Of a DNA stretch of 28,660 nt, positions 1 through 28,338 are shown in pieces. The notes under the pieces were generated by a model that was not told the DNA's origin, ran no database searches, and worked only from the letters and a program-made list of their open reading frames with translations. Location of the stretch: contig NW_021833519.1 of NCBI RefSeq assembly GCF_006345805.1, positions 1 through 28,660 of the forward strand, written 5' to 3'. The stretch is from Octopus sinensis. Taxonomy: Eukaryota. Made by a program: the position numbers and the translations under genes. The first letter of the stretch is position 1; each line of letters starts with the position of its first letter.

Positions 1-696
1 TATTGAATAAAAAAGAAAATATAAGTTAATTAAGGTTGCTTAAGAGCAGAAAGGATAGCGTGGCTATTACCCCTGACAACGGTTGTTGAAAGGCGTTGAA
101 ACAGCCATTCGGTCTCCCTTCTATCTTTCGTCTGAACCGAGATCAGGGATCCAAGTTTCCTGATGAAAGAGATTGATTCCGGACCGAAGACTCCAGATGA
201 CTCCACAATAATCGGTTGCGGTGTTAAAGGTGGCTGCGAAGCCACTGTCCACGCCGTGAGGGATTTTACAGAGTTTTCACACTCGGCTTATAACGACTGT
301 ATTCTTGCTAAATTGGACATGAAAAATGCTTTTAATTGCATCGACCGCTCATACTTCCTTAAAGAATGCAGCAAACATAACATTCCATTACTCCCGATGG
401 CCAGCATGTGCTACTAATGATAGACGGACACACGATCTTGTCCTCCTCTGGGGTCCAACAAGGTGACCCCCTTGGTCCATTACTCTTCTCCATGGGCGTT
501 AACCCAACACCACGCGCCGTAAAATCACCGCTCAACGTTTGGTATCTGGATGACATTACTATTGGTGGTCCTGCTCACCAAGTCATCTTGGATATCGAAT
601 CAATCGCTGTAAGTCTGAACAAAATTGGATTACAGTTGAACCCTTCAAAATGTGAGATCATAAACCTCAACGCCAACGAGGAAGATTTCGCGACTA

Positions 697-2434
697 CAGT
701 CCGACCCCAAAATGGGGCAGACCCCAGGGGTGGGGCACCCTCGGATTTTGGGGCACCCCCGCAATTTGGGGCACTTTATTCCAAAAGTACATTTTGGCAG
801 AAAAAAAATAAAAATCGATAAAAAATTATGGAATTTTTGGGGCACCATAAAATCATTTATAAGGAATTAAAAATAAAATAAAATTATAATAAATTAATTA
901 TTTTTTGTTTTATTTTCAATTTATATTTTTATTGCTGTGGTTATGGATTACGAAACTAAATTGAAGATTGCTAAAGAAATTTTGAAGAAAAATTTATCTG
1001 AGAGGCAACTAATGAAAAAGTACAACACAAGTAAAGGAACAATATCAATAATAAAACGAAATATTGTACCTTTCTTGCAACACGGCAATACTATTTCTGA
1101 GGAATATGACACATTTAAAGCCGATAAAGATAAATTTGATGATCAAGTCTTTGAAATATTTCAAAGACTACGCGTAGATAAAATTCCGATTTCAGGCCCT
1201 ATTTTGAAAAAAATTGCCTTAGTTACAGCTTCAAAAATTGGATTTACTTCTTTTAAAGCTTCCAATGGGTGGCTTGATAGATTTAAATTGCGGCATGAAC
1301 TTCAATTCAAGTCAATATGTGGTGAAAAGCTTCATGTGATTTATCTTATGTGAAAAATTATTTTGAAAAATATGACCAGAAAGTATTAAAATATGGACCT
1401 GAGAATATATTTAATTGTGATGAAACTGCGCTTTTTATAAAAAGAACTCCTCAAAAATCATTTGTTGAACAAGGCGAACCGTGTTTTGGTTATAAACAAG
1501 GGAAAGAAAGACTCACTGTTCTTCTATGCTGCAGTTTAATCGGGGAAAAACTTAATCCATTGATTATTGGAAAATATAAAAAACCTCGGTGTCTAAAAAA
1601 TTTTGATGTTCAAGATTTTGGGTTATTGTATTCATCTTCTCAAAATGCATGGATGACTGGAAAGATTTTTATGAGTTGGCTTACACTTATAAATGAATCG
1701 TTTTGCAAAAACAACAGAAAAATATTATTAATACTTGACAATGCGGGATGCCATAAAACTGCCGAATGTTCGAACATCGAATTTTTATTTTTGCCGAAAA
1801 ATACAACGCCCTATTTACAACCTTTGGATATGGGAATAATCAAGATTTTTAAAGATTATTATTCCTCTTTCTTAATGGAATTTTTATGTTTTCAAGATTT
1901 CGAAAACGATTTTACACATTCTATTGGTAAATTAAATTTGCGTCAGGTTATGATGCTAATTTCAAAAGGATGGGAGAAAATAGATGCTAAAAGTATTGTT
2001 AATTGTTGGAAGAAAATCGACAGGAACCGTGATTCTTATGCAAAAAAACTGTCTAACAGATAAACATTTAGATCAAGTTGTTAACGAAACAATTGATGGA
2101 GAATGCGAAGACATGACAATAATGTTTATGATACATATTCAGAAACCGAAAATAGTGAAAATGTCGTAGCAAAACAAAAGATCTGCTTAACAATTTAGAA
2201 GAAAAAATTTCTAATGTTGCACCAAGTATGCTCCGAGATTTTTTTGATTTTCGGCTGAAATTGACGAACAATATCAGACAAAACTCTACAAATAAAAAGA
2301 AAATAACTGAATATTTTAGTAAAAATGTTTTTTGATGTTTATTAATGGTTTAATTTTTAAAAAAATAACAACCCCTGTTTTTGGGGCACCCCCGCATTTT
2401 GGGGCACTTGGTGCCCCATTTGGGGGTCGGACTG
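697..2434 (+). mobile_element. pogo/Tigger DNA transposon (1738 bp), full length with both TIRs
   Basis: 23-bp TIRs CAGTCCGACCCCAAAATGGGGCA (697-719) and its complement (2412-2434), 22/23 identical. TA duplication at 695-696 and 2435-2436. Removing the element plus one TA restores the RT frame (ACT ATA GTG = T-I-V). Confidence 0.95.
943..2335 (+). pseudogene. pogo-family transposase (CENP-B-type HTH + DDE_1), frameshifted
   Basis: HTH region ASNGWLDRFKLRH; catalytic motifs FNCDET, ILDNAGCH, QPLDMG (29 residues between 2nd and 3rd Asp). One A is missing in the run at 1325-1328 (GE-KASCD). Further frameshifts lie at about 2010-2165. The tail KKKITEYF before TGA at 2333-2335 resembles a PIP box. 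Confidence 0.88.
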
Positions 2435-3546
2435 TATAGTGGAAAAATATCACTCAGTCTTACCGGGTGGTATTATAACCAGGAAAGGGTCGCTTGAAGT
2501 CTTAGGATCTCCCATTTTCTCGGAAGGAATCGAGAAACTACTGTCCGGAAAATTATCCACTTTTGAGTTGATGTCAAACAGGCTATCCATCCTGGACGCT
2601 CACGAAGGGTTTTTCTTGTTGAAAAACTTCATATCACTCCCCAAGCTACAACACGTTCTCCGCTCTGCCCCCTGCTTTATAAACCCTGAACTTCTCAAAG
2701 AACTGGAAACAGGGCTGAAAAACAGTGCCGAAAATCTCTGCAACATTCGTTTTGACGAAGCCTCGTGGACCCAAGCCACGCTTCCAATACGATTCGGAGG
2801 CATTGGTCTCCGCTCCCCAGCAGATATTGCATTACCCGCTTTCCTCTCTTCTCGATTGTCGTGTGACTCACTGGTGGTTGCTGTTCTCCCCCTTTCCACT
2901 GAACGTAACGCATCCTCCTGGTATCAGATGGCAATCGAAATTTGGTCGAACAAAGGCCTCAAGACACCTGCTAACTCATTCTCACAGAGATGTTGGGACG
3001 ACCTGCATTCTATGTCAATTTACCACCACTTGGAAGAGGTCTCTGATCAATCTCGTCTTGCATGCCTTAGAAGCGCTTCACAAAAACAATCCGGAGCGTG
3101 GCTCAATGCATGTCCTATCCCTTCAGTCGGAAACAAACTGGACGACGAGACATTGCGAATTGCAATCTCCTTACGCCTTTGCATGAAGATCTGTCGCCAG
3201 CACCGCTGTAGTTGCGGGGCTTCCGTTGACGAATTCGGACGGTACGCTCTCTCATGCAGACGCAGTGCAGGCCGGTTTCCAAGACATCATGCAATGAACC
3301 TAATTGTCAAGAACGCTTTGCATGCAGCTGGTTTCCCGGCACAGCTGGAGCCTCCTGGTCTCATCCGTACAGACGGAAAAAGGCCGGATGGGATAACAAT
3401 TTTCCCGTACACCAACGGGAAGTGCCTTGTTTGGGACTGCGCCTGCACCGACACCTACTCGGAGACAAACCTGATCGCCTCAGCCTCCTCTCCAGGATAT
3501 GCTTCATAATTAATTTAATTGCAATGATTTCTAATCAATAATCGTT

Positions 3547-6955: not shown

Positions 6956-8587
6956 AAATTGTAGATTACCTCTAGCTATTATGTAATGGCTCGCAGGATT
7001 GAAAAACAATTTCCGCGTAAAACAGCCAGCGAGATCCTCTGAATAAGGAATATAAATTCCTTGGGATCTCTGAAGCAGTAGGAGCACAGGCGGCCAAGTT
7101 TCTCAGGATATAAACAATTTTTGGGATCAAAAGATAGTTCTTGAGGATGTACAATGAAGGATGAGGATCAATGACAGAAAGTTTTTCACAGAGATGCTAT
7201 AAGATTTTTTTGGCAAGAAGGATTCGTGTAGCTAAGTCGGCGAGAATCGGTGACCCAGAATTTCCAGATCAGACAAAGATGTCTGTCTCAACTTAGGAAG
7301 GAGTCTGCAGAAAAAAGAGAAGGAGTTCTTAAACAGGGATGGCTCAACAGAGAGATTGACAATCTCGGACTTGCTGGAATTAATAACCCGACCAATGTCG
7401 GGTAAAGCCTGAATTAGACTGACTAAGTCCTTTAGCAAAATATCAGGCGGACCGCCCAGGCTGCAATCGTCGAGATACCAAAGATTAAGGGGTGATTCAT
7501 TAACCCGGGCAATGGCAAGAGCGAACAGTAATGGTTTCAAAGGATCACCTTGTTGGACGCCACAGGACGAAGAAATGAAAGAACCACCGATTAAAAGTGA
7601 CGGAAGCGAGTACAAGAGTGATATAAAGGGAAGCAAATGTGGAACACGGTCTTGACAGACCTCCAACAAATGCCCACGGTCCAGAGAATTGAAAGCATTT
7701 GTTACATCCAGTTTTAATAAGGCAAAGGGAATATTGGAACGAGAAGAAGCTTGAATAAAACAACGACAGGCATAAACAGAAGACTCGCACCCGCCAGGGA
7801 CACCCACACCCAACTGAATGGGCTGCAGTTGCTCGCCAATAGAAGGGATAACGGACTTGCAACAGACTTTCGCAAATAAACGACGAAAGACATTTCCAAC
7901 AACAATAGGGCTAATACCACCATCTTTCTTTCCCAAGGCAGTAAGATTCGCGGAAAAGAACAGAATTCTAGGATGGTCAGAAATTTTGCCGCTTAGGAAT
8001 AAATTGCACAAGTTAGTGAAAGCATTCAAGAGGCGATTCCCGGTATCACCAGTTGCGGAAATTAAGTCTCTCAAATGAATAGGGCGGAGACCGTCGATAC
8101 CTCCACTACTGTTGCCCCTAAAGGCGTTTAAGGCGTCCAGAAGTTGTTTGGAAGAAACAGAAAAGGGAAAGCAAGACGACTGGGCCACATCAAAAGTTAC
8201 TGATTTTCCAATAGGGTGCTTTTCCTTGAGAATGCGAACAACATCGGGGGTGATTGTACGGACAGAATCAGAAGATGACAAGAGACGAACAGCCGCGCTG
8301 ACATCATGCGACATTAAACAGGAGTTAATCCGAGACCGTAAAGCGTCCTTCGACGAGGGCTTAGCGGTAGATTTTAAATGAGAGGGAGACGGAGCGAGAG
8401 AGCCATTTATAAACTGACTCATATTCTTTTTCAAGAAAGAAACAAAGGAGCCACCGGCACCGGGGCGACGAGCAGGGGTGCCTAACGCAAAAGTTGGGAA
8501 AAGGAATAAACAATTCCAATTATGAATGGATGGATCGGAAATGACAGAATCAATGAAAGAAGAAAGGTTTTGGGCCCCCGAGATACG
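6956..8587 (-). mobile_element. Second CRE-type RLE non-LTR retrotransposon, 5'-truncated and internally deleted
   Basis: The 400-aa ORF has LKEKHP, GGIDGLRP, KKDGGI.P, QLGVGVPGG, KLDVTNAFN, GVQQGDPL and WYLDD. It continues with frameshifts to IPKIVYILR, then joins directly to the endonuclease tail KLGRLC...QRISLAVLRGNCFSIL (stop at 6979-6981). Degenerate flanking direct repeats at 6936-6955 and 8588-8605. Confidence 0.88.
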
Positions 8588-9979: not shown

Positions 9980-12727
9980 TCATCTCTTGAAACGCGGACG
10001 ACTAAAAATAATTTAAATAAACTTACGCTGGGAGTACAGGAGCATTTCTAATTTAATAAAAAACAGTTAAAACCCATTTTGATTTGTCTGACTTGGAGTC
10101 ATCGTAAATTTTTGGGAAGGAGAAATAGATAGACTATGGCAAATACGTTGGATATTATCATTGGCCTCTTTTGTGGTATTATACAGTCTCAAGACTTCCT
10201 CGTCATGGGCGACTTTTTCAGGAGGCAGTTGCAGGAGCTCTTCCTTACACATATTAATAAACACATACAATTGAAGTTTGAGAATACAATTCAGCAACCA
10301 AGTCATTTTTAGCAAAATTAAGAGCCTAAATGTATTTTAAAAAACATACTTTAGTTATAAAGCAAAGATAAATTATTTTTGGGACAATATCTAAAATTAT
10401 TTTCTCATACACTTTGGCATATGACTCAACACATTCTTTTACGTTGTTAACACCTTTTTCTAAATCATACATATTCTGAAATAAAATGAGAAATAAACTT
10501 GGTTTGCAGAATCGTTAGGTTTTACACCGATTTCAACGAGACCGAGCAACCATTCGTTGCATTCTTCAAAAGATGTGAACTGTAATTCCAGAGTTTTCAA
10601 ATCCTTGTATAAATTTCCTCTAAAAATTATTAGTCGGATAGAACTTGGAATCGGATCCAACAAGAATGATGATAAAATTGGTACTGAAATTTTCAGGTAT
10701 TTTATAACGAAGTTTGTTCCCAGATATCGATAGTTTCTTATCTTTTTCCTAAAATAAAAAAACAAAATATGAACGTCTTCGTCTTTGTATAAAATGAAAT
10801 TTTCGTTCACCAGAGTAGCAAAAAACAAATTTCCTTTACTTTTTGAAGTCAATAAATTCTTTAAAGTGACATATCCCTTTTTGCCTGAAAGCTATATAAT
10901 TTAATAAATTAAATAAAAAACCGAAACTGGATTTACAGATTTTTTATTTTTTTCACTTTAATATTAATATAAACTAAAACTTTGGAGTCCCAATAAAATC
11001 AGGATGATTTGTATTTATATAGTTTGCATGAAAATTGACTGTAAGTTCCAATTGTTGCCATGCTTCCTGATAATATGATTGAAGACCATTCATTACAAGA
11101 TCTTTAACTGAATTCTGTAAACATGGATAGTCTTTGAGCTAAATTTATTATATTAACTGAACAAAACCAAATCTATGCCACTCAAAAATGAATCGCTGAC
11201 ATGTCCGTATACTTCATCGAGACATGATTTTACAGGCGTAATGCTCTGTTCAATCTCCATCTTAACTATCATTTCAAATGCTAAATCAGGAGTATGTAGT
11301 CCAGTTCTTAAAAATAATTCATAAACATAATCACTTGACTCCATGAACGTTCTGAATAGCAACTCGAATATTTGTTAGAATATCCTTATTTCGTTCTTCC
11401 GATTGCTAAAACACGCTAAAATACAATTTAATAACCTTTCGGGATAATTGTGGAAAATGTTTAAAGAAACAACGATTTATTTTAGCACCAGTCGATAACT
11501 TTTGGGAAGATATTTGAGCAACTGTATTCGCTGATACTATATCGTGTTGTAGTAGAGATGTAAAAGCTCCGACTGATCTGATTTAATTTTAAAATTAATA
11601 AAATAAACTTCATCATTAATTTATGGGACATAACCCCTCCTCTGCTTTTTATGTCTCGCACTTGAGACTCCAATTCTGTTAGTTGTTCTGAGATTTTTTG
11701 ACTAAGTTGAGGCATCACTTTCATGATATGATCCATCAGTTGTGTATTTAGTGTTTTTTGTAAATATTTTGTCCCCATTTTGTCAGCCATATGTCTAAAA
11801 GAGTCGCTGGAATTTATTTCAACTTATATTCAGGGTGGTTTATAAAGAAACGATGTTCATTTTCTAGTGCTATTCCAATCGCTGTTTTTTGTTCAATTTC
11901 CCTTTGATTTCGGTTTATAACTCCAACATAACCTAAAATAATTTCAAGTCTAAAAAACCTCTTTTAAGTGGAAAAAGTTTATTTTCTAATATTTCACGAG
12001 CACTGGTCTCTTTATCCATCAAATCAAGCTTAGTGATGACTCCGATAGTGCGGATCCCCGAAGGATCGACTTCCTTTGCGATTTGAAGAGCGTCCGAATT
12101 TGCCAAATCCGTAGTAGCGGGACTTACAGCAAGAATCAGAGAATTTGGCTTCTCTATAAATTTGAGGACCATATTCCTTATTAATTCAACAATATCTTGA
12201 TCCTGACCTCCCACAGCAACCTTGGTAAGACCTGGCAAGTCCACCAAAGTCAAATCAATTACTGTTTTAAATCTTATTGAGAATTCTCACCATGTGGGGA
12301 ATATATTTTTAAATTTATACTGACGTCAGAAACGGATTTATTAGTTCCACATGTCCTATTTGTTTCTGCTTCAATTTCATTTCGAATTTCTTCAAAGTTA
12401 TAAAATTTTTTCGGAGTATGTATAAATTCCCCGTATTCTGCGTAAATTGAATATAATTGTGTCACCTTCTTTCGAACTATGTAATTGAAGAACTAACGGT
12501 CTCCTAGTCACAATTCCACTTCCTCGAGGTAAAAAGTCCCTAAAAATCAAATTGAGTTGAAACCTTCCCACAAAATTTTCTAATACACTGCTTTTTCCAG
12601 CGCTTTGGCAACCAACGACTACAATTTGTGGTAGGTCAAAGGAGCAGGGGATGGAAGAAGAAGCAAAGGAATCTTGGATTTTATTGATAACCGCAATTAA
12701 ATTTTCCATTCCGTTAGTTCTTGACAT
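9980..12727 (-). CDS. DNM: Classical dynamin (GTPase, middle, PH, GED, minimal PRD), 19 exons, 754 aa
   Basis: Motifs [56 protein letters not shown] domain NLYKD..LEL, GED and C-terminal PVLPARPR. GT-AG introns at 12540-12563, 12438-12465, 12262-12290, 11933-11958, 11795-11823, 11578-11608, 11406-11435, 11307-11334, 11139-11167, 10956-10980, 10892-10921, 10749-10774, 10620-10644, 10476-10498, 10326-10349, 10244-10268, 10048-10073 and 10002-10026. Total intron length 483 nt; the spliced CDS is 2265 nt, in frame with no internal stop. Confidence 0.96.
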
Positions 12728-13864
12728 TTTTATGATGATTTTTGCGAAATAAAATATTAACTGCAACAAACAACAAATAGAGCAACCTTATTAAATCAAA
12801 TTAAAAATACAATTACGCTTCTAATATTTTTATAATTTATTTAATATTTAAATATTAAATATTTGGTGATAAAATTATTTTTTTAATTAAATTGAATTTT
12901 CACTTTACTTAATTTGTTAACCAAATTGATTGGAATATAGAAATTCTCAAAATGTATGATAAAAATGTCAATTTTTAAACAATTTAATTGCCCTATCTTG
13001 ATAATTGTCAAAATATTAAAACCAATATTAATTGGAATTCTTTTGATTACATATCACAATGGTAAATCCACTAATTAATAGTTTTTTTCAGACTAGGAAT
13101 TGAGAATTTCTGAATGTAGAGGCTAGTGTTTCTACGTGTTTTGGTGCTATTCTGTGAGCAATATGTTTAATTAGATTCATTGAAAGAGATCTTTGAGCAC
13201 ATGACGTTTCATGGGAAAAAGTTTTTGCTTTCATTTTGTCAATTTTACTCATTTCCTAAGCTTGCAATATGCCCCAGATTCCGAAACAGACAATGCATGT
13301 AAGATATAAATTCCTGCACTTGTTCTGGACATTGTGTCATATAATTTTGCTTTACCGATACTTAAAATCGATTTATTGAAAATCTTTAGTTGCCTGTGTG
13401 ACAAACATGTTTATATAATTAATTTGATTAATAAAATTATTCAGGATTGATTAGTCACATGCCGGATACTAAATTTTTTACTTAGCGCTTTTTATATATC
13501 ACTACTAACAGGATTGATAAAATAAGCAATTTAAAGACGTTTTTACGAGCTTTTCAATTTTCAGAAAACTATTGGGGACGGCTAAATTTGACGTGAGTAA
13601 CAATTTGAGTATAAATAAGGCATTTATTTTCTATCTGGTCTAGTATTGAGAGATCTGGAAAATTTAGATCACTTAAAATAGTAATGTTTTTTTATTATTG
13701 TATTTATTTATTAATAAAAGGACAAGAGAAAAATCGTCATTGGCAGATAGCCAGAGTATTGTAAAGTTATTAAAAATTCACATAAAAAATAGATAGAGCT
13801 ATAATTTCAGACTTTTTAAATTGCTCTTATAGCTTCTTAAATAGAATTTGATTTAAAAGCTAAT

Positions 13865-18769: not shown

Positions 18770-20413
18770 GAGCGAAAACTCGTCTGTAGACGAGTTTTCG
18801 CCTAACTCGCCTAAATTTATTTGGCGACAACTCTTCTACGAAGAAAAATATTAAGGGTAAATAAAATAAAATTTTAAAACAATTACTTTTTATTCTGAAC
18901 TTTTAAAGCAAATCAAACCATCAATTAGCTTAAAATAGCAATCTACTTCAAATTCATGAAAATTTTCACATGCTATTCTCAGTTCAAGTTCCATTTTGCA
19001 GTCTGTCGCAGACACTTTAAGATACCTTCCTGACTTAATTTTTGTCATTTTCACAAAAAGTCTTTTTTCTTCCCTGGCCAAAACATTGACAAAGCTGCCA
19101 AATTTGGGTGCGCTCTATTAAAAGAACTGTTCAACAGCTTATGCCAACCTTCCAATGAATTGGTCGTCCTGGGCATTGAATTTAATACCCGATGAAAATA
19201 ACTCCAAAAACTGACATCATAAGATGGAGCAGAAATAAATTGTTTTTTAAATTAAATCAAAAAATTCATTATTTGTTGATTGTTTTCTTTTCCTGTCGCA
19301 TCAAGAGAAAATTTTTCAAATTCCAATAAAACATTTTCCACAGGGATGAAAGCTAAATGGTAGCATTTTCTCAATAATTTTCGTTCTCACGATGAAACGT
19401 CTCTGTAGGCTCTGCTCCCACAAGACCAAGACATTGTATTTTCCGCCATATGATTTGGCCGAAATAGAAATTGCAGCCAAATACATTAGACGACGAAAAA
19501 ACTGATTTTGTGGAGTTAATTAACCCCTTTTCAAAATCAATTAAAATACTTGCTGGTGAAGTAACAACAAGTGTCTTTATTTCTTCAAATAATGCACAGT
19601 AGGCATTTTCTGTTTGGTTGAGCAAAAAAGCGTGCGCAAGAGGCCAGAATTTACCTAAGTATTTTCCTTGTATTGTAATCATTTGTTCGAATTGATTAGG
19701 CTCGCTGATTTTCTCAAAATGTCAACCCAGACATCTGATTTTCTCAAAATGTCAACCTGATAATCCGAACAAAAAATGACGTAACGATTTACATCATTAA
19801 TTCCAGAACCTTGCGATAAAAAATTTCGCCCCGATCATTATAACACAAACTTTCAGGAATTTCAGGAATGGTCGAAACAAAATTTGGTATCAGTGTTTCT
19901 CTTTCCCGTTGAACGAGACGAGTCAATGAACGTTCCTTTGGCAAGATTTTAATGACGTCAACATTGGCTCCAATGAGGCTTCTTGACACCACATTCATAG
20001 TTCTGTCTTCTGACGCCTTTGCGGCATCTTTCAGGTCAGAAACTAGTTTCATGCTTTTTATCTCATGATCCTCAAAGGGGCCATGATTATGAGCATTTTT
20101 TGTGCTCAACTTGTTTTGAGCATCCACCGTGCACCTCGCCCTGCATTCTCGATTTCTGCACCTCCAATAGGTAAGACCGTCTTTTTTTCTACCTGTATTA
20201 TACAAATAGTTCCGGTGTAGTAAAAGTTTGCCACCTCTTTGGCTTTTAAGCAGTTCAAAGTCAGTCATAATAAGGATTAAAGTAAAAAAATTGTTGAAAT
20301 TTTAATTAATTAGATTTAATCTGGTAAAAATAAATTTTTTTTTTTTTTAAGTAGGCGAGTTGCCAAATAAATTTAGGCGAGTTAGGCGACAACTCGACTA
20401 TAGGCGAGTGCTC
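18770..20413 (-). mobile_element. Mutator-like (MULE) transposon with FLYWCH zinc finger; transposase pseudogene 18890-20268
   Basis: Imperfect ~70-bp TIRs starting GAGC with repeated ACTCGCCTA motifs. FLYWCH YLY...TYWRC...CRAR...HNH; MULE core ILIDFEKGL, GCNFYF, PRTTNSLEGWH. Frameshifts and deletions; no 9-bp TSD. Confidence 0.9.
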
Positions 20414-20488: not shown

Positions 20489-21170
20489 TGATACTCCACG
20501 TGAAACTTTATCACTTCATCTGACTATAAACAGACAAATACGTAGTGAAATACAACATACTATACAGCAACTGTTCTAAAGACAATAATTTCACGCAAAA
20601 TAAATGGCCCACTTTTTGCTCGAGTTCAGATTTCATGGGGAAACTAATAAGTTCCAAATGGAGCTTTATGAGCTGAAACCTTTCGGCTCGGATTGCCATC
20701 AAATACGACAGGTTAAACTACGTTCATCAGAGATCTTCTTAAAGAAAATCCCATATTGGCAAGTAATGATGAACTGGAAAAGTATCTCTGACGATACTCT
20801 CATCGGGATTTAAAGTGAAACGCTTCATGAAGGCTGGAATAAATTTACCAATAGCAAAGCTGACTATCCTCTCGAGAGGTGAGGCAAACTCATTAATCCG
20901 ACTGGGAACAAACATTAGCTTCAGAAAAATTGACTGCGAATGGTTTTGTTGTTACAAATGCCAATCCTACGGGCATATAGCACGTTATTGCTAAGCAGAA
21001 ATAAGATGCTTAACTTGTGGCGGTCCTCATCATAGAAAATAATGCCCAAATCCAAGAGTAAGCACGAAACTCTGTATCAATTGTGGATCCTCAGAACACT
21101 GGGCTACATACGGAGACTGCCCCTTAGCGAAAAATAACAAAACTACAGAAGCCAATCTGATTCCGGATTG
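20450..21170 (+). pseudogene. LINE ORF1 (gag-like, I/Jockey-type) remnant with three zinc knuckles
   Basis: CYKCQSYGHIARYC, CLTCGGPH...C and CINCGSSEHWATYGDCP at 20950-21123. In-frame stops and a frameshift; no intact ORF2 follows. Confidence 0.82.
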
Positions 21171-21635: not shown

Positions 21636-23210
21636 ATGATATTAATGTTGATAATGAGTTCATTGAGGACTGGTATATTGAGAATATAATGGATAGACTG
21701 TTTGGAGTCATTGCGGATTCCCGCGGAGAAGAGGTTGCTGAACAAGCTGATATTGGGGTACGAAGAGCGGGGAATATACGGATCCCCAACTGTCAATTCA
21801 AGTGACATTGTGAAGGTCTCAATGGGCCTGTCACTAATCCAAGTTGTGGATTTGAATGAAATTGAAGGGACATTGACAACAAGCATTTGGGTGACTCTGG
21901 TATTTTTACACATTAACCTGCAGACTTGGAACGATGTCTACTTGAGGTGGAATCCGAAAGACTACGACAACATAACAAACGTCAAAATCAAGATCGGTCT
22001 CATCTGGTCACCTGACATTGTCCTTTATAACACGTGCTTTTAGTTGTGGCTAAATTAGAGCCGACGATCGACTGAATGAAAAAAGGGAAGCCTTGGCTGT
22101 AGTTGAGCATGACGGACAAGTGCAGTGGATGCCCCAATCGTTGTACAAAAGTTTGTGCGACTTTGATGTGACCTACTTCCCCTTCGACGTGCAAAACTGT
22201 TCCATGGAGTTTGGACCCTGGACGTATGATGACAGTCGAGTCGATTTTGATTTTTATTTGGGCATTCGTCGAGTTATATTAAGCAATTACGTGCCCAGCA
22301 ACGAGTGGGATATTATTGGAAATTCCGGAAGTCGTGTTCTCAAAAAGTACTTTTAGTATTTAAGTATTCAGTTATTCCTGCTGTCCTCAGTATAGATATA
22401 CAATTCTCCGATATTCCGTTCAAATGAGGAGGAAGGTCATGTTCCATTTTTTTACTTTGGTCATCCCTTGCATGCTTCTTTCACTTCTCACAGTCGTCAG
22501 TTTCTGGATTCCTCCGTGGTCTCCAGCCAAAATCATAATCGGTAATTTTATATTACTAGTTGTAGGTCTCAGTATATTCCTTGCTTTTATTCTTCTTTTG
22601 CTTCTCCTTGCTCAGAGTACTCCAAAATCAGCAGTCATCCCCATCATTGGTGTCCTCCTACTTTTATTTCAGGTGAGTTATTTGGGGCCACCATCACCAT
22701 GACTGCTCTTTCAACTCTAGTAGCGATATATATATCCAATATATATGTCACTAAAAATACTCCAGTCCATCCTGTTACTAGAAAAGTCCGATTTGATGTC
22801 ATTCCAACAGATTCTCTTTGAATACTGCGGTCCTTTTCTCGGAATGAGCAAAGAATTGAGCTCCGTTAGAGTTCATTCGAATAGTGAAACTACGAGGGAC
22901 ATAAATTATAGCCAGCAATTACAACAACCGAGACTAATCGTGGAAAATGGCAATTATTCTGACATATTACAGTGTAGATTTCAGGCAGAGCATAGTTAAC
23001 ATTCGAGACTATGCTTTATTCCTACGAAAAAAAACAAACAAGAAACGACAAGATGACTATTTTGTAACTGAACGGAAATATTCTGCTCTGGTTATCGACC
23101 GACTAATCTTTGTTTGCTATTTGTTCTGCATTGTTCTTATTGTCATCACCGATTTGATTAGTAAGATACGTGTTATTTATTTAGAAATTACATATTTTTA
23201 TCGTATGTGA
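21636..23210 (+). CDS. Nicotinic acetylcholine receptor alpha-type subunit (Cys-loop channel), predicted anion-selective, about 450 aa
   Basis: EKRLL..L, WND..L.WNP.DY, IWSPDIVLYN, Cys-loop CDFDVTYFPFDVQNC, loop B GPWTYD, loop C YSCC (vicinal cysteines), M1-M4 and KYSALVIDRL. Introns at 21673-21696, 21900-21923, 22034-22058, 22347-22371, 22542-22565, 22650-22672, 22786-22810 and 23161-23184. One further junction in the M3-M4 loop is unresolved (22974-22995 GT-AG or 22950-22977 GC-AG are candidates). Confidence 0.94.
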
Positions 23211-24981: not shown

Positions 24982-25239
24982 TATCATTTCATTAATAATC
25001 CGAAAATGTCTATAGTCTCGTGTTTTGAGAAAATCTTTTAAACAAGTTTCTTAAAACTTTTGAAAATTCTTCATACTAATAAACAATTTTTAAGCATTTT
25101 AATAATTGATTGTAACAATTTAAATTGAACAATTCGAATTTTAAATATTAAGCTACCCTTCTGAGATGTTAAACAGCGATTACTTGTGTCGCCACAATGA
25201 GATGGTAAGGTGCATTTCATCAGGTGTATTTCTCCGATT

Positions 25240-25400
25240 TCTTCCATGTTTTCCAGCTCTGGCGTTCCAGTCACCAGCAATGAAGCACATGTATGAAGAA
25301 CTGAGGGTTTTATATAAATGTGTGAGGGTGGAATAGAATTCATCAAGTTCTTCCGGGTTGGAAAAGGCTCTGATACCAGTTGCGCATACACATTTGACTG
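25240..25400 (-). pseudogene. AP-like endonuclease fragment of an RTE-type LINE
   Basis: CAT....NPEELDEFYSTL...FIAGDWNARAG matches the YAPT..EE.D.FY..L....GDFNA.G motif. Confidence 0.7.
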
Positions 25401-25525
25401 TGACCTTGGGCCTTGGAGCACCGCTATCCTGGCCGAGACGGAGCACACCCGGGTACGTGCTTTTTTAATTTTCGGTTAATTGCAAATCCTAGGCTGTAGT
25501 GACGACAGATCTAATGAGTAATGAG

Positions 25526-28338
25526 TAGGGCAACCAAAAGTCATATAAGTCATATTATTTTTTATTGGTCATATTGATGTTATTTCTATAATTAATAAAC
25601 TATTATTATATTTTTTAATAGTTTTATTAATTTTTTTAGGTCTTATAGGTAATATTTTATGCCGTTAGGTCAGCGGTTCTCAACCTTTTTTAGACTGGGG
25701 ACCACTTTTGCACTATAAAATTTTGTGGGGACCACCTTAAATAAAATAAACATTTTTGGTATTAGCGCACAATTTTTGGCCTCGCCAGGGCCAGGTTTAG
25801 ACATGTTCGAATATTTATTATAAAAATAACATGAACATTATGAAAATAACAGAAAATTTAATAGTAATTTAGTAAGATTCTGATCTTGTTTGCTCAGAAT
25901 AATTTTACTTATATCAGGCTCTATGTTCGACAAAGCTACTCGCATATCATCTTGTACCCGTAGTCTATTTCTATATTTTGTTTTAGAAAAGTCAGACACG
26001 ACATCGCCATTTCACAGTGATAAGTAGTGGGGAATGCAAGTATTGATTCCAATGCAGTTTTACTCAAAATGGGGAATTCTTTCGCCATCTGACACCTAAC
26101 AATAAAAAGTAATTATTAATGAGAATACCAAAAATCTAATAATGAAGTACATTTGAAAATAATCTGAGCAGACTGATTACATTGAAGTTCAATCAAGCTC
26201 TGCTGAAAATTGAGTTCCTGATATTCTTTAAATGAGGTCAAGAAAGGTTGAACGATCCAGTTTGGAATTGGGTCTTCAACAGGAATTTTCTGGGTGTACA
26301 GACTCTTTGTGGGCCTAAGTTGAGAAGGTTTCAGTGAATTGTTTCCAAAATTTTATGGCAAATCATGCATTTTGCCTTTATTTCATTATTTGGGGCAATG
26401 AATTTAGTGAATCCAAATTGTACGTAAGAATCCGACCAAAGACGACGATTCTTGTTAACCATAACTAGAATGATAAACCACGCTAATCAAATCAGATTAA
26501 TTTCAATGTTTTTGATTTATACTTAATTGTACAATTAGTTTTAACTTTAATATATTTTTATTTTTCGAAAATTCCTGGGGACCACTAAAAATTTTCTGGG
26601 GACCACTAGTGGTCCCCGGGGACCACGGTTGAGAACCGCTGCGTTAGGTCATATAATTTTTTTAGGTCATATTTTTTTGTTAGGTCATATTTATATTTAT
26701 TAAATCATATATTTTTATTAATCTTTGTTTAAATTTTGACAATAACACGTTTTCACACGTTTTGGTAGTTGGCCGCTTAAATATTATAGATTACATGCCG
26801 AAACAAAAGCAATCTAACAATCAAAAGTTAAATAAAATAATTAAACGATACCCGTCTGAATTTCAGATTGATTCAGCTGGACGTTTATTTTGTTTGAAAT
26901 GCTCAGTTTTTGTTAATTTTACGAAAACGTTCAATGTGGTGCAGCACAGGGAAACTACCCGGCATAAAAAAGGAACAGACAAAATTTCAAACGCAACTCA
27001 ACACTCTTCCGAAACTTGAAGCAAAGAAAAATTTCGGAATTTGCTTAGTCGAAATGATGACGAAGGCGAATATACCTCTTTACAAAATAAGAAATGAACA
27101 CTTTATTAATTTTTTTAATAATCTCGGATTTACTGTTCCCAGCGAAAGTTGGTGCAGAAATATAGTTCCAGATTTGCAATATCAATTGATTGAAATGCTT
27201 AAAACAATTATTTCTGGAAAAGATATATTCATACTTGTTGATGAAACGGAAATCAATAAACAGAAATTTGCTAACGTTCTTTGTGGGACTATTGAAAGTC
27301 CTGAAAAAATTTATTTATTAAATTGTTTGGAAATTGAAATTTGTGATGCATCTGCAATTTGTAGAATTGTGGATGACACAATTCGAATTTATGATATAAA
27401 AGGGAAAATTTTTTATTATTTATTTCTGATGCTGCCCGTTATATGACTTTAGCAGCGAGTACATTGAAGGTAAAATGATTCATATGACTTGTTTTGCTCA
27501 TCTTCTGCACAATTGTGCATTAAAGATTAGAGCACATTATAAATATATTGACGACTTAATCTTGTCTATCAAAATGTCGATTGTAAAAAATCCCTCCCGG
27601 AGGAGTCTTTTTACAGTTATTGGACTTCCACCTGATGTTGTTCTAACAAGATGGGGCAGCTGGTTGGACGCAGCAAAATATTATAGTCAATATCTTTCAA
27701 GAGTTTGCGAAATTGTCTTATCCTATCCAAATTGTGGAAAGATTGTGATGAATGCGAAAAATACTGTTAGCTCTGAAAATTTGGAGAAAAATCTGGCAGA
27801 GTTAATGGCTTTACAACCCTATTATTGATGAAATCAGAAAATGCCAAGAAAAATTTTATACAATTAAAGATGCAATTGAATTCATTGATTCCGTTAATTT
27901 TGGTGAGGATAATTGTGACTTTAACAAGTATTTTTTAAAGCGGATAAGTATGTTACCATGACGAATATTAAAAATGCTAGAATTTCTAGTATTTCTCCAG
28001 AAACATTTATTTACTTATGGAAATGTCCTTCAACATCAATATCTGCAGAAAGAAGCTTTTCTATGCTGAATAAATTGCTCGAAAAGGATAGAAACTTCAA
28101 GCCAGAAAATATTAAATATTATATGATGCAATATTATAATAAATCATTGATTGAAATGTTTAATTTTTTATATTTTCAAATTCAGAATATCTAAAAATCA
28201 AAATTCGATAGGTCATATTTTGATTTTTTAGGTCATATTTTAATATTTTTAAGTTATATTTTAGAATTTTAAAGTCATAAAGTCATATTTTTTACGGTCA
28301 TATTTAACTTTTTTAAGGTCATATTTCTGGTTGCCCGA
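25526..28338 (+). mobile_element. hAT-related (CGGBP1/DUF659-like) transposon; frameshifted transposase at about 26795-28194
   Basis: Short TIRs TAGGGCAACCA / TGGTTGCCC(GA) and dense (A/G)GTCATA subterminal arrays at both ends. Protein motifs MPK...LFCLKC...QH..T.RH, VDETE, SDAARYM, TCFAH, TRWGSW and SISAERSFS. No TSD is preserved. Confidence 0.82.
25671..26641 (-). mobile_element. Internally deleted Buster-type hAT (971 bp) nested in the 5' end of the larger hAT
   Basis: Perfect 15-bp TIR CAGCGGTTCTCAACC, perfect 8-bp TSD CGTTAGGT (nnnTAnnn) and GGGGACCAC subterminal repeats. A zinc-finger N-terminus (YVQFGF...C.IC...SLKPSQL) is fused to the C-terminus (WIVQPF, LIELQ, FW, FPTTYHCE, KTKYRNRL). 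A 33-nt GT-AG intron is at 26096-26128. Confidence 0.93.

Follow-up and report, generated by a model that had tools for sequence, protein, structure and literature searches.

The window analysed here, a stretch of 28,660 nucleotides (nt) of contig NW_021833519.1 in the Octopus sinensis assembly GCF_006345805.1, carries a nine-exon gene for a Cys-loop protein of 460 amino acids, hereafter the receptor (Table 1). We read it as an intact alpha-type subunit gene in that part of the nicotinic acetylcholine receptor (nAChR) family, the spiralian Pro-Ala branch, to which the LnAChR and SmACC subunits belong; its product would form an anion channel, and the animal that it comes from is most likely a dicyemid. 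The probability that we attach to this reading as a whole is about 0.66. Nicotinic-type chloride channels (2005, 2014), a speciality of spiralians, and nicotinic-like genes in dicyemids (2019) were already known. The novelty lies in placing one gene of a probable dicyemid in the anion-type Pro-Ala branch, and in its pore rings, all of them neutral.

Our starting point is the predicted charge-selectivity filter. The raw letters at 22520-22531 read TCT CCA GCC AAA, and Pro-Ala-Lys lies exactly at 22523-22531, where the first-pass annotation of the window had placed it. Aligned with HMMER, SPAK of the receptor falls without a gap on SGEK of human alpha4; therefore Pro-Ala stands in for Gly-Glu at -2'/-1' of the second membrane helix (M2), while Leu 9' is retained and Gln takes the place of Glu at 20'. 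The residues first read at -2' (Pro), -1' (Ala) and 20' (Gln) agree with this alignment, in which Pro-Ala stands opposite the Gly-Glu of cation-selective subunits. We worked with the best 120 database matches and the receptor protein, 121 sequences in all. Pro -2' and Ala -1' are found in 43 of the 43 homologues that form a clade with the receptor, and outside the clade the residues are Gly (about 95%) and Glu (100%). The Pro-Ala motif in M2 is described as a defining feature of acetylcholine (ACh)-gated chloride channels (PMC4055736), which is how the first-pass annotation had used it.

After splicing, the M1-M2 region of the receptor reads FWIPPWSPAKIIIGLSIFLAFILLLLLLAQSTP, with 22542-22565 removed. 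The span first given for it, 22502-22620, opens correctly on the codon of the Phe at 22502 and closes slightly too early, the last Pro codon ending at 22624 (a trivial offset). A raw open reading frame (ORF), 22424-22702, crosses the M2 intron in frame and free of stops, and splicing therefore had to be argued for. An ORF-only reading that keeps this intron would add NFILLVVG, eight residues, within M2; this site is free of insertions in all 120 homologues, and the spliced reading is gapless, also against human alpha4. Moreover, an intron interrupts the identical Gly 4' codon, in the same phase, in two other genes of the Pro-Ala type, those of the limpet Lottia gigantea (L002) and the annelid Dimorphilus gyrociliatus (L001), with the junctions CTT G/GTAAGT...TTTTAG/GT ATG AAT and CTG G/GTAAGT...TTAAAG/GT ATG AAC, respectively. 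On the gapless alignment and the common intron position we rejected retention of the M2 intron, and the position and phase shared with the limpet and annelid orthologues support the predicted splice. Five of the eight intron positions of the receptor gene have a counterpart in Lottia: the M2 intron was checked to the base, and the other four (behind WVTL/WATY, within the codon that follows LYN, at IPxIG and past the basic stretch downstream of M3) were judged from the ends of tblastn blocks.

Other introns of these genes deserve a brief mention. The 24-nt intron at 21900-21923 of the receptor gene is likewise in frame and stop-free, with the ORF 21702-22043 running through it, and its retention would add eight residues beside loop D. 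Two further introns, 22347-22371 (before YSCC, in loop C) and 22974-22995 (in the M3-M4 loop), are without a counterpart in Lottia or Dimorphilus; the genome is otherwise described as conserving intron positions, and these two may have been gained. In the Dimorphilus gene (CAJFCJ010000008.1, 557-19834) the signal-peptide exon is separated from the rest by a first intron some 19 kb long. The genome of this annelid is known as compact, and the long intron may be an annotation join instead of a real one.

The receptor belongs to the spiralian Pro-Ala branch of nAChRs. Molluscs, annelids, a brachiopod and flatworms (among them schistosomes) supply its best 39 matches, which are 34-51% identical and have PPESPAK in every case; the first subunit of the GEK type appears at rank 40, and three rotifer sequences lower in the match list are again of the Pro-Ala type. 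In a neighbour-joining tree with 300 bootstrap replicates, the 44 Pro-Ala sequences, receptor included, form one bipartition in 300 of the 300 replicates when all columns are used. Because a group defined by a motif that the tree includes would be circular, the tree was rerun without the pore motif: the bipartition appears in 299/300 replicates without the M1-M2 linker and M2, and in 284/300 with the extracellular domain only. The membership of the spiralian anion-type clade proposed at first pass is thus borne out with the pore region left aside, and the receptor does not fall among the cation-selective subunits. At the positions diagnostic for the clade it has the clade state at 14 of 23 (7 of the 9 extracellular ones) and the non-clade consensus at two. 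Its place inside the clade shifts, from basal with all columns to a weak grouping with flatworms when the extracellular domain alone is used (144/300), as expected because its branch is long. The 90% cluster of one match, P0011 (50% identical to the receptor protein over 67% of its length), contains the Lymnaea stagnalis nAChR subunit type F, ABA60385.1, which ties the Pro-Ala clade to the anion-selective Lymnaea subunits (the LnAChR type B/F/I/K group) reportedly described by van Nierop and colleagues in 2005. Gene structure is also common to the clade, since the phase-1 Gly 4' intron is identical in its Lottia and Dimorphilus genes; together with clade membership, this shared intron adds a minor, independent character by which the host is tied to Spiralia.

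The remainder of the protein has the architecture of a Cys-loop channel. Pfam finds a ligand-binding domain (Neur_chan_LBD, 8.9e-57, residues 23-235, full model length) and a four-helix membrane domain (Neur_chan_memb, 3e-18). Human alpha4 is the best relative of solved structure (1.9e-75), and the best 60 solved relatives listed are acetylcholine-receptor subunits throughout; as all 120 database matches are of the nicotinic type too, we found no closer kinship to GABA or glycine receptors of the kind seen in the nematode ACC-1 family. The five residues of the aromatic box (Y115, W171, Y214, Y222 and W77) all stand in conserved columns of the 121-sequence alignment, as the first-pass annotation had claimed for the ligand-binding aromatics, and Y214-S-C216-C217 provides the YxCC signature of an alpha-type subunit. 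This signature, the Pfam domains and the relationship to alpha4 uphold the original naming of the gene as an nAChR alpha subunit. The invariant alignment columns of the Cys-loop (C150, F157, P158, D160 and C164) are all present. These are features of a real gene, come down by descent, and no coincidental resemblance. At the tip of loop C, HMMER and MAFFT alike place one extra residue and set Y222 on the conserved loop-C Tyr; an Arg at this distal position was considered and is ruled out by the same one-residue insertion, the Tyr being retained. The residues of the principal face and W77 of the complementary face occur within one subunit. Such an alpha-type signature with a loop D Trp is the combination of homomer-forming subunits, which would suit homomeric assembly and does not prove it.

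The model of the gene was built from sequence. Its eight introns measure, in order, 24, 24, 25, 25, 24, 23, 25 and 22 nt; all eight are GT..AG and have a higher A+T content than the exons (40% G+C). The last intron was picked from all frame-restoring GT..AG pairs for its size, like that of the other introns. The 49-nt intron 22940-22988 of a first model was dropped on these grounds in favour of the 22-nt 22974-22995, both being predictions, and the pore region is the same whichever is used. The N-terminus and the last intron of the model are uncertain. Beyond the last intron, the pre-M4/M4 segment aligns with alpha4 and also with the clade consensus EWRxVAxVxDRxFF.

What sets the receptor apart from its relatives is the charge of the pore. 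At -4', which we take to be the cytoplasmic ring of the classical nAChR work (reportedly that of Imoto and colleagues in 1988), it has a Trp found in no other of the 121 sequences: the residue is Glu in 43/43 Pro-Ala clade homologues and Asp or Glu in 76/77 other nAChR homologues (Asn once). At 20', where the receptor has Gln, 41 of 43 clade members and all 77 others have Glu or Asp. Hence all three classical negative rings are uncharged in the receptor (Trp -4', Ala -1', Gln 20') with Lys 0' kept, a state unique among the 121, and we infer that such rings would favour anion over cation permeation. As no tested channel has a pore with Trp -4' and Gln 20', conductance and selectivity could be unusual. 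Being the most charge-depleted of the set, this pore lends itself to a test of how much weight the rings at -4' and 20' carry when the Glu at -1' is missing.

These observations bear on the idea that the receptor is a conventional nicotinic one, excitatory and permeable to cations, in line with the published scheme for dicyemids, in which Zverkov et al. (2019) propose depolarisation or Ca2+ entry (PMC6543705). The ligand-binding domain, typical of nicotinic receptors, would suit such a channel. The pore would not: the intermediate-ring Glu present in 77 of 77 non-clade homologues is an Ala after Pro here, the acids at -4' and 20' are gone, and the receptor nests in the Pro-Ala clade and not with GEK-type subunits. 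We therefore regard a cation channel as very improbable.

If the receptor is instead the anion channel that we propose, five subunits would assemble into a pentamer, either homomeric or mixed with other Pro-Ala subunits, its stoichiometry being putative. ACh would bind at the subunit interfaces, where the principal face would contribute Y115, W171, Y214, C216-C217 and Y222 and the complementary face W77, and would open the M2-lined pore with its Leu at 9'. The narrow cytoplasmic end would present Pro(-2')-Ala(-1')-Lys(0') in place of Gly-Glu-Lys, and the remaining two negative rings would be neutral (Trp -4', Gln 20'), so that the channel should pass chloride and not cations. Both gating by ACh and selectivity for chloride are predicted here by homology.

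Alternatively, the receptor could be a functional Pro-Ala subunit and still not a homomeric ACh-gated chloride channel, be it as an obligate partner in heteromers, with choline or a similar small amine as its ligand, or with a conductance or selectivity altered by its unusual pore (Trp -4', Gln 20'). In several clade members the CC pair, or all of loop C, is missing, as in P0039 (Schistosoma) and P0064 (rotifer), which implies that heteromers exist in the clade; the receptor, however, unites the principal (YxCC, loops A/B/C) and complementary (loop D Trp) faces in one subunit as homomer-formers do, and within the clade SmACC-1, of the alpha type, functions as a homomer (PMC4055736). Partners would be at hand, as eight Cys-loop genes (PF02931, PF02932), all nAChR-like, are reported from Dicyema sp. 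(Zverkov et al., 2019, PMC6543705). The extra residue in loop C and the change of 13 near-invariant positions likewise favour such a reading. On balance we consider this alternative unlikely.

Several points weigh against the receptor being a working ACh-gated chloride channel of a dicyemid. Its function is predicted from a handful of tested relatives; the tested clade members are few, and all have Glu at -4' and Glu or Asp at 20', unlike the Trp and Gln of the receptor. The one-residue insertion in loop C belongs here too, as do the basis of the tree (neighbour-joining on the best 120 matches only) and the shifting position of the receptor inside the Pro-Ala clade. Of 61 near-invariant columns (at least 90% identical among the homologues) the receptor keeps 48, a fraction of 0.79; the same score in the homologues has a median of 0.96, a 5th percentile of 0.857 and a minimum of 0.68. 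The changes include R42S, P103K, Y238H and the pre-M4 Trp to Arg. Moreover, the signal peptide is short, the databases searched contain neither an identical or near-identical protein nor a transcript, and the host organism has been deduced indirectly.

Some of these points could equally mean that the gene is decaying or silent, a recent pseudogene inherited from an ancestor with a nervous system and with its frame still open. A column retention below that of 95% of the homologues, the lack of a transcript-derived or identical protein in the protein collection, a weak N-terminal hydrophobic segment and a position amid transposon remnants would all be expected of such a gene. Set against them are 460 codons open over nine exons, eight of eight GT..AG introns, the five intron positions with a limpet counterpart, and the preservation of the Cys-loop cysteines, FPFD, the aromatic box, the CC pair, Leu 9' and the Pro and Gly flanking M2-M3. 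The open frame, the canonical splice sites and the hallmark residues argue against an old pseudogene; a recent loss of function is conceivable. A dynamin gene in the same window offers a control. It is 57-64% identical to other animal dynamins (over its N-terminal 316 amino acids), where the few bilaterian-bilaterian values available are mostly 74-86%, and the protein collection contains no near-identical protein for it either. Since the neighbour is equally divergent and also without a database match, divergence and absence from databases appear to be properties of the genome and not of the receptor itself. Fast evolution has been reported for dicyemids (PMC6543705). We thus regard decay as quite improbable, and the receptor is best seen as a fast-evolving but intact member of its family.

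Which animal the window comes from is a question of its own. The receptor and dynamin genes together contain 13 introns of 22-29 nt (those of dynamin, for the first five, being 24, 28, 29, 26 and 29 nt). Among 51 animal genomes, introns with a length below 30 bp have been reported only from Dicyema japonicum and myxobolid myxozoans (PMC13644364), and the median intron is given as 27 bp in Dicyema sp. versus 57 bp in the orthonectid Intoshia (PMC6543705). About one-third of the window is G+C, and it is crowded with reverse-transcriptase fragments of long interspersed nuclear elements (LINEs) and with remnants of DNA transposons; the D. japonicum genome is described as 36.7% G+C and 49% repeats, with many copies of LINE ORF2 (PMC6736024). 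Named members of the receptor's clade are spiralians only. A cephalopod origin of the receptor gene was rejected, as its product is only 42-45% identical to octopus-type proteins and its introns measure 22-25 nt. A myxozoan origin was judged unlikely: the receptor lies in a spiralian clade, and dynamin is least like that of Myxobolus (57%, versus 59-64% to the 11 bilaterian sequences compared). Because of the intron sizes and the clade placement, we consider it very probable that the window is dicyemid genome; the guess at such a host made at first pass fits the 22-29 nt introns and their published restriction.

Food for speculation is what such a channel would do. That an animal with neither neurons nor muscles keeps a working ACh-gated anion channel, devoid of the three negative rings, for non-neuronal signalling is a tentative proposal, and we would rate it as rather doubtful. 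If it were true, the channel might serve, for example, to control ciliary beating in the vermiform or infusoriform stages or to sense ACh or choline of the cephalopod host, and the scheme published for cholinergic signalling in dicyemids, which is excitatory throughout, would change. The gene in any case offers a way into the question whether acetylcholine has any use in an animal without nerves. The suggestion made at first pass that the receptor is a possible drug target matters little where the parasite lives in cephalopod kidneys.

Around the receptor we found no functionally linked gene nearby. The dynamin gene and the FLYWCH/MULE and gag-like remnants lie upstream of it, and LINE-endonuclease-like and hAT-like remnants downstream. 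Among the LINE remnants, two ORFs match RVT_1 (2e-09 and 5e-07) and one has an endonuclease-like motif; a 356-amino-acid ORF beside the first reverse-transcriptase fragment is without a Pfam match. The hAT-like row was recognised by eye, and its two longest ORFs have no Pfam match at E<=0.01.

Table 1. Positions of the receptor gene, its functional elements and the other features of the window (position 1 is the first letter of the window).
Feature	Positions	Strand	Remarks
Receptor gene, whole	21636-23210	+	9 exons, 460 codons + stop
Receptor exons 1-5	21636-21672, 21697-21899, 21924-22033, 22059-22346, 22372-22541	+	
Receptor exons 6-9	22566-22649, 22673-22785, 22811-22973, 22996-23210	+	
Loop D Trp W77, complementary face	21888-21890	+	TSIWVTL aligned to TNVWxxx
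Loop A Tyr Y115	22026-22028	+	PDIVLYN motif
Cys-loop C150-x13-C164 with FPFD	22156-22200	+	C150-DFDVTYFPFDVQN-C164, intact
Loop B Trp W171	22219-22221	+	GPWTYD aligned to GSWTYD
Loop C Y214-S-C216-C217-P-Q-Y-R-Y222	22373-22399	+	YxCC at 22373-22384; distal Tyr Y222 at 22397-22399
Trp at -4' (cytoplasmic ring position)	22517-22519	+	Trp in the receptor only
Pro(-2') Ala(-1') Lys(0')	22523-22531	+	Predicted charge-selectivity filter, cytoplasmic end of M2
M2 intron gtaattttatattactagttgtag	22542-22565	+	24 nt, GT..AG, phase 1, splits Gly 4' codon
Rest of M2 (5' to 20' + STP)	22566-22624	+	Leu 9' 22580-22582; Gln 20' 22613-22615
Last intron, predicted	22974-22995	+	22 nt, within the short M3-M4 loop
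Pre-M4 + M4 segment KYSALVIDRLIFVCYLFCIVLIVITDL	23078-23158	+	Aligned to alpha4 WKYVAMVIDRIFLW
Dynamin gene	10400-12730	-	Classical dynamin with GTPase domain, middle domain and PH-like segments; ~9 kb upstream of receptor
LINE-type retrotransposon remnants	408-818 (+), 2439-3506 (+), 7235-8434 (-), 25180-25446 (-)		
pogo/Tc5-type DNA transposon	937-2060	+	HTH_Tnp_Tc5 4e-12, then DDE_1 1e-37, in two adjacent ORFs
FLYWCH zinc finger (8e-13), then MULE transposase domain (7.5e-07)	19374-20268	-	~1.4 kb upstream of receptor
gag-like CCHC zinc-knuckle remnant	20815-21140	+	Weak Pfam match (0.005), stops inside, ~500 bp before receptor start codon
hAT-like transposase ORF row	26762-28194	+	BED-like finger, CFAHLLHNC, C-terminal SAERSFSMLNKLL

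Among known systems, the neuronal alpha4 and alpha7 subunits of vertebrates (6ur8, 5kxi, 7koo; 1.9e-75 to 1e-65), the best solved relatives, have the fold of the receptor and also its Cys-loop, its aromatic box, YxCC and Leu 9'. They are cation-selective and differ from the receptor in that -2' to 0' read Gly-Glu-Lys and the rings at -4' and 20' are acidic. The nematode ACC-1 family, in turn, is ACh-gated and anion-selective with Pro-Ala in M2, and is described as kin of GABA and glycine receptors (PMC4055736), whereas the kin of the receptor are nicotinic.

The likeness to the Lymnaea LnAChR subunits comprises a nicotinic-type extracellular domain, PP-x-SPAK and membership of the same clade (bootstrap 95-100%). 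Nonetheless, Lymnaea-type sequences have Glu -4', Glu or Asp 20' and Val 9' where the receptor has Trp, Gln and Leu, and the M3-M4 loop of the receptor is much shorter and its loop C one residue longer. That Lymnaea has both cation- and anion-selective nAChRs is confirmed in citing papers, including PMC4055736. In the same source, the Pro-Ala subunits of schistosomes group with Lymnaea's nicotinic chloride channels as a clade within the nicotinic family, which sets them apart from nematode ACC, and SmACC-1, of the alpha type, forms a homomeric chloride channel that ACh and nicotine activate (MacDonald et al., 2014; PMC4055736). SmACC-1 and SmACC-2 share with the receptor the Pro-Ala motif in a nicotinic-type subunit, and SmACC-1 also its YxCC. 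Three schistosome relatives in our set (P0035, P0038 and P0039) fall in the receptor's clade, none of the matches being assigned as SmACC-1; P0039 is without the CC pair that the receptor has. Flatworm proteins are much longer than the receptor owing to big inserts in loop C and the M3-M4 loop, and they act within a nervous system.

The nAChR-like receptors of Dicyema sp. probably share both gene family and kind of organism with the receptor, and the literature searched contained no paper beyond Zverkov et al. that links Dicyema with nicotinic receptors. In the scheme of these authors, dicyemid nAChR-like receptors raise Ca2+ directly or by depolarisation, and its presentation does not discuss pore motifs (PMC6543705). 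The gene described here thus places a member of the inhibitory branch in a probable dicyemid, against the depolarising, Ca2+-raising receptor of the sole published signalling model.

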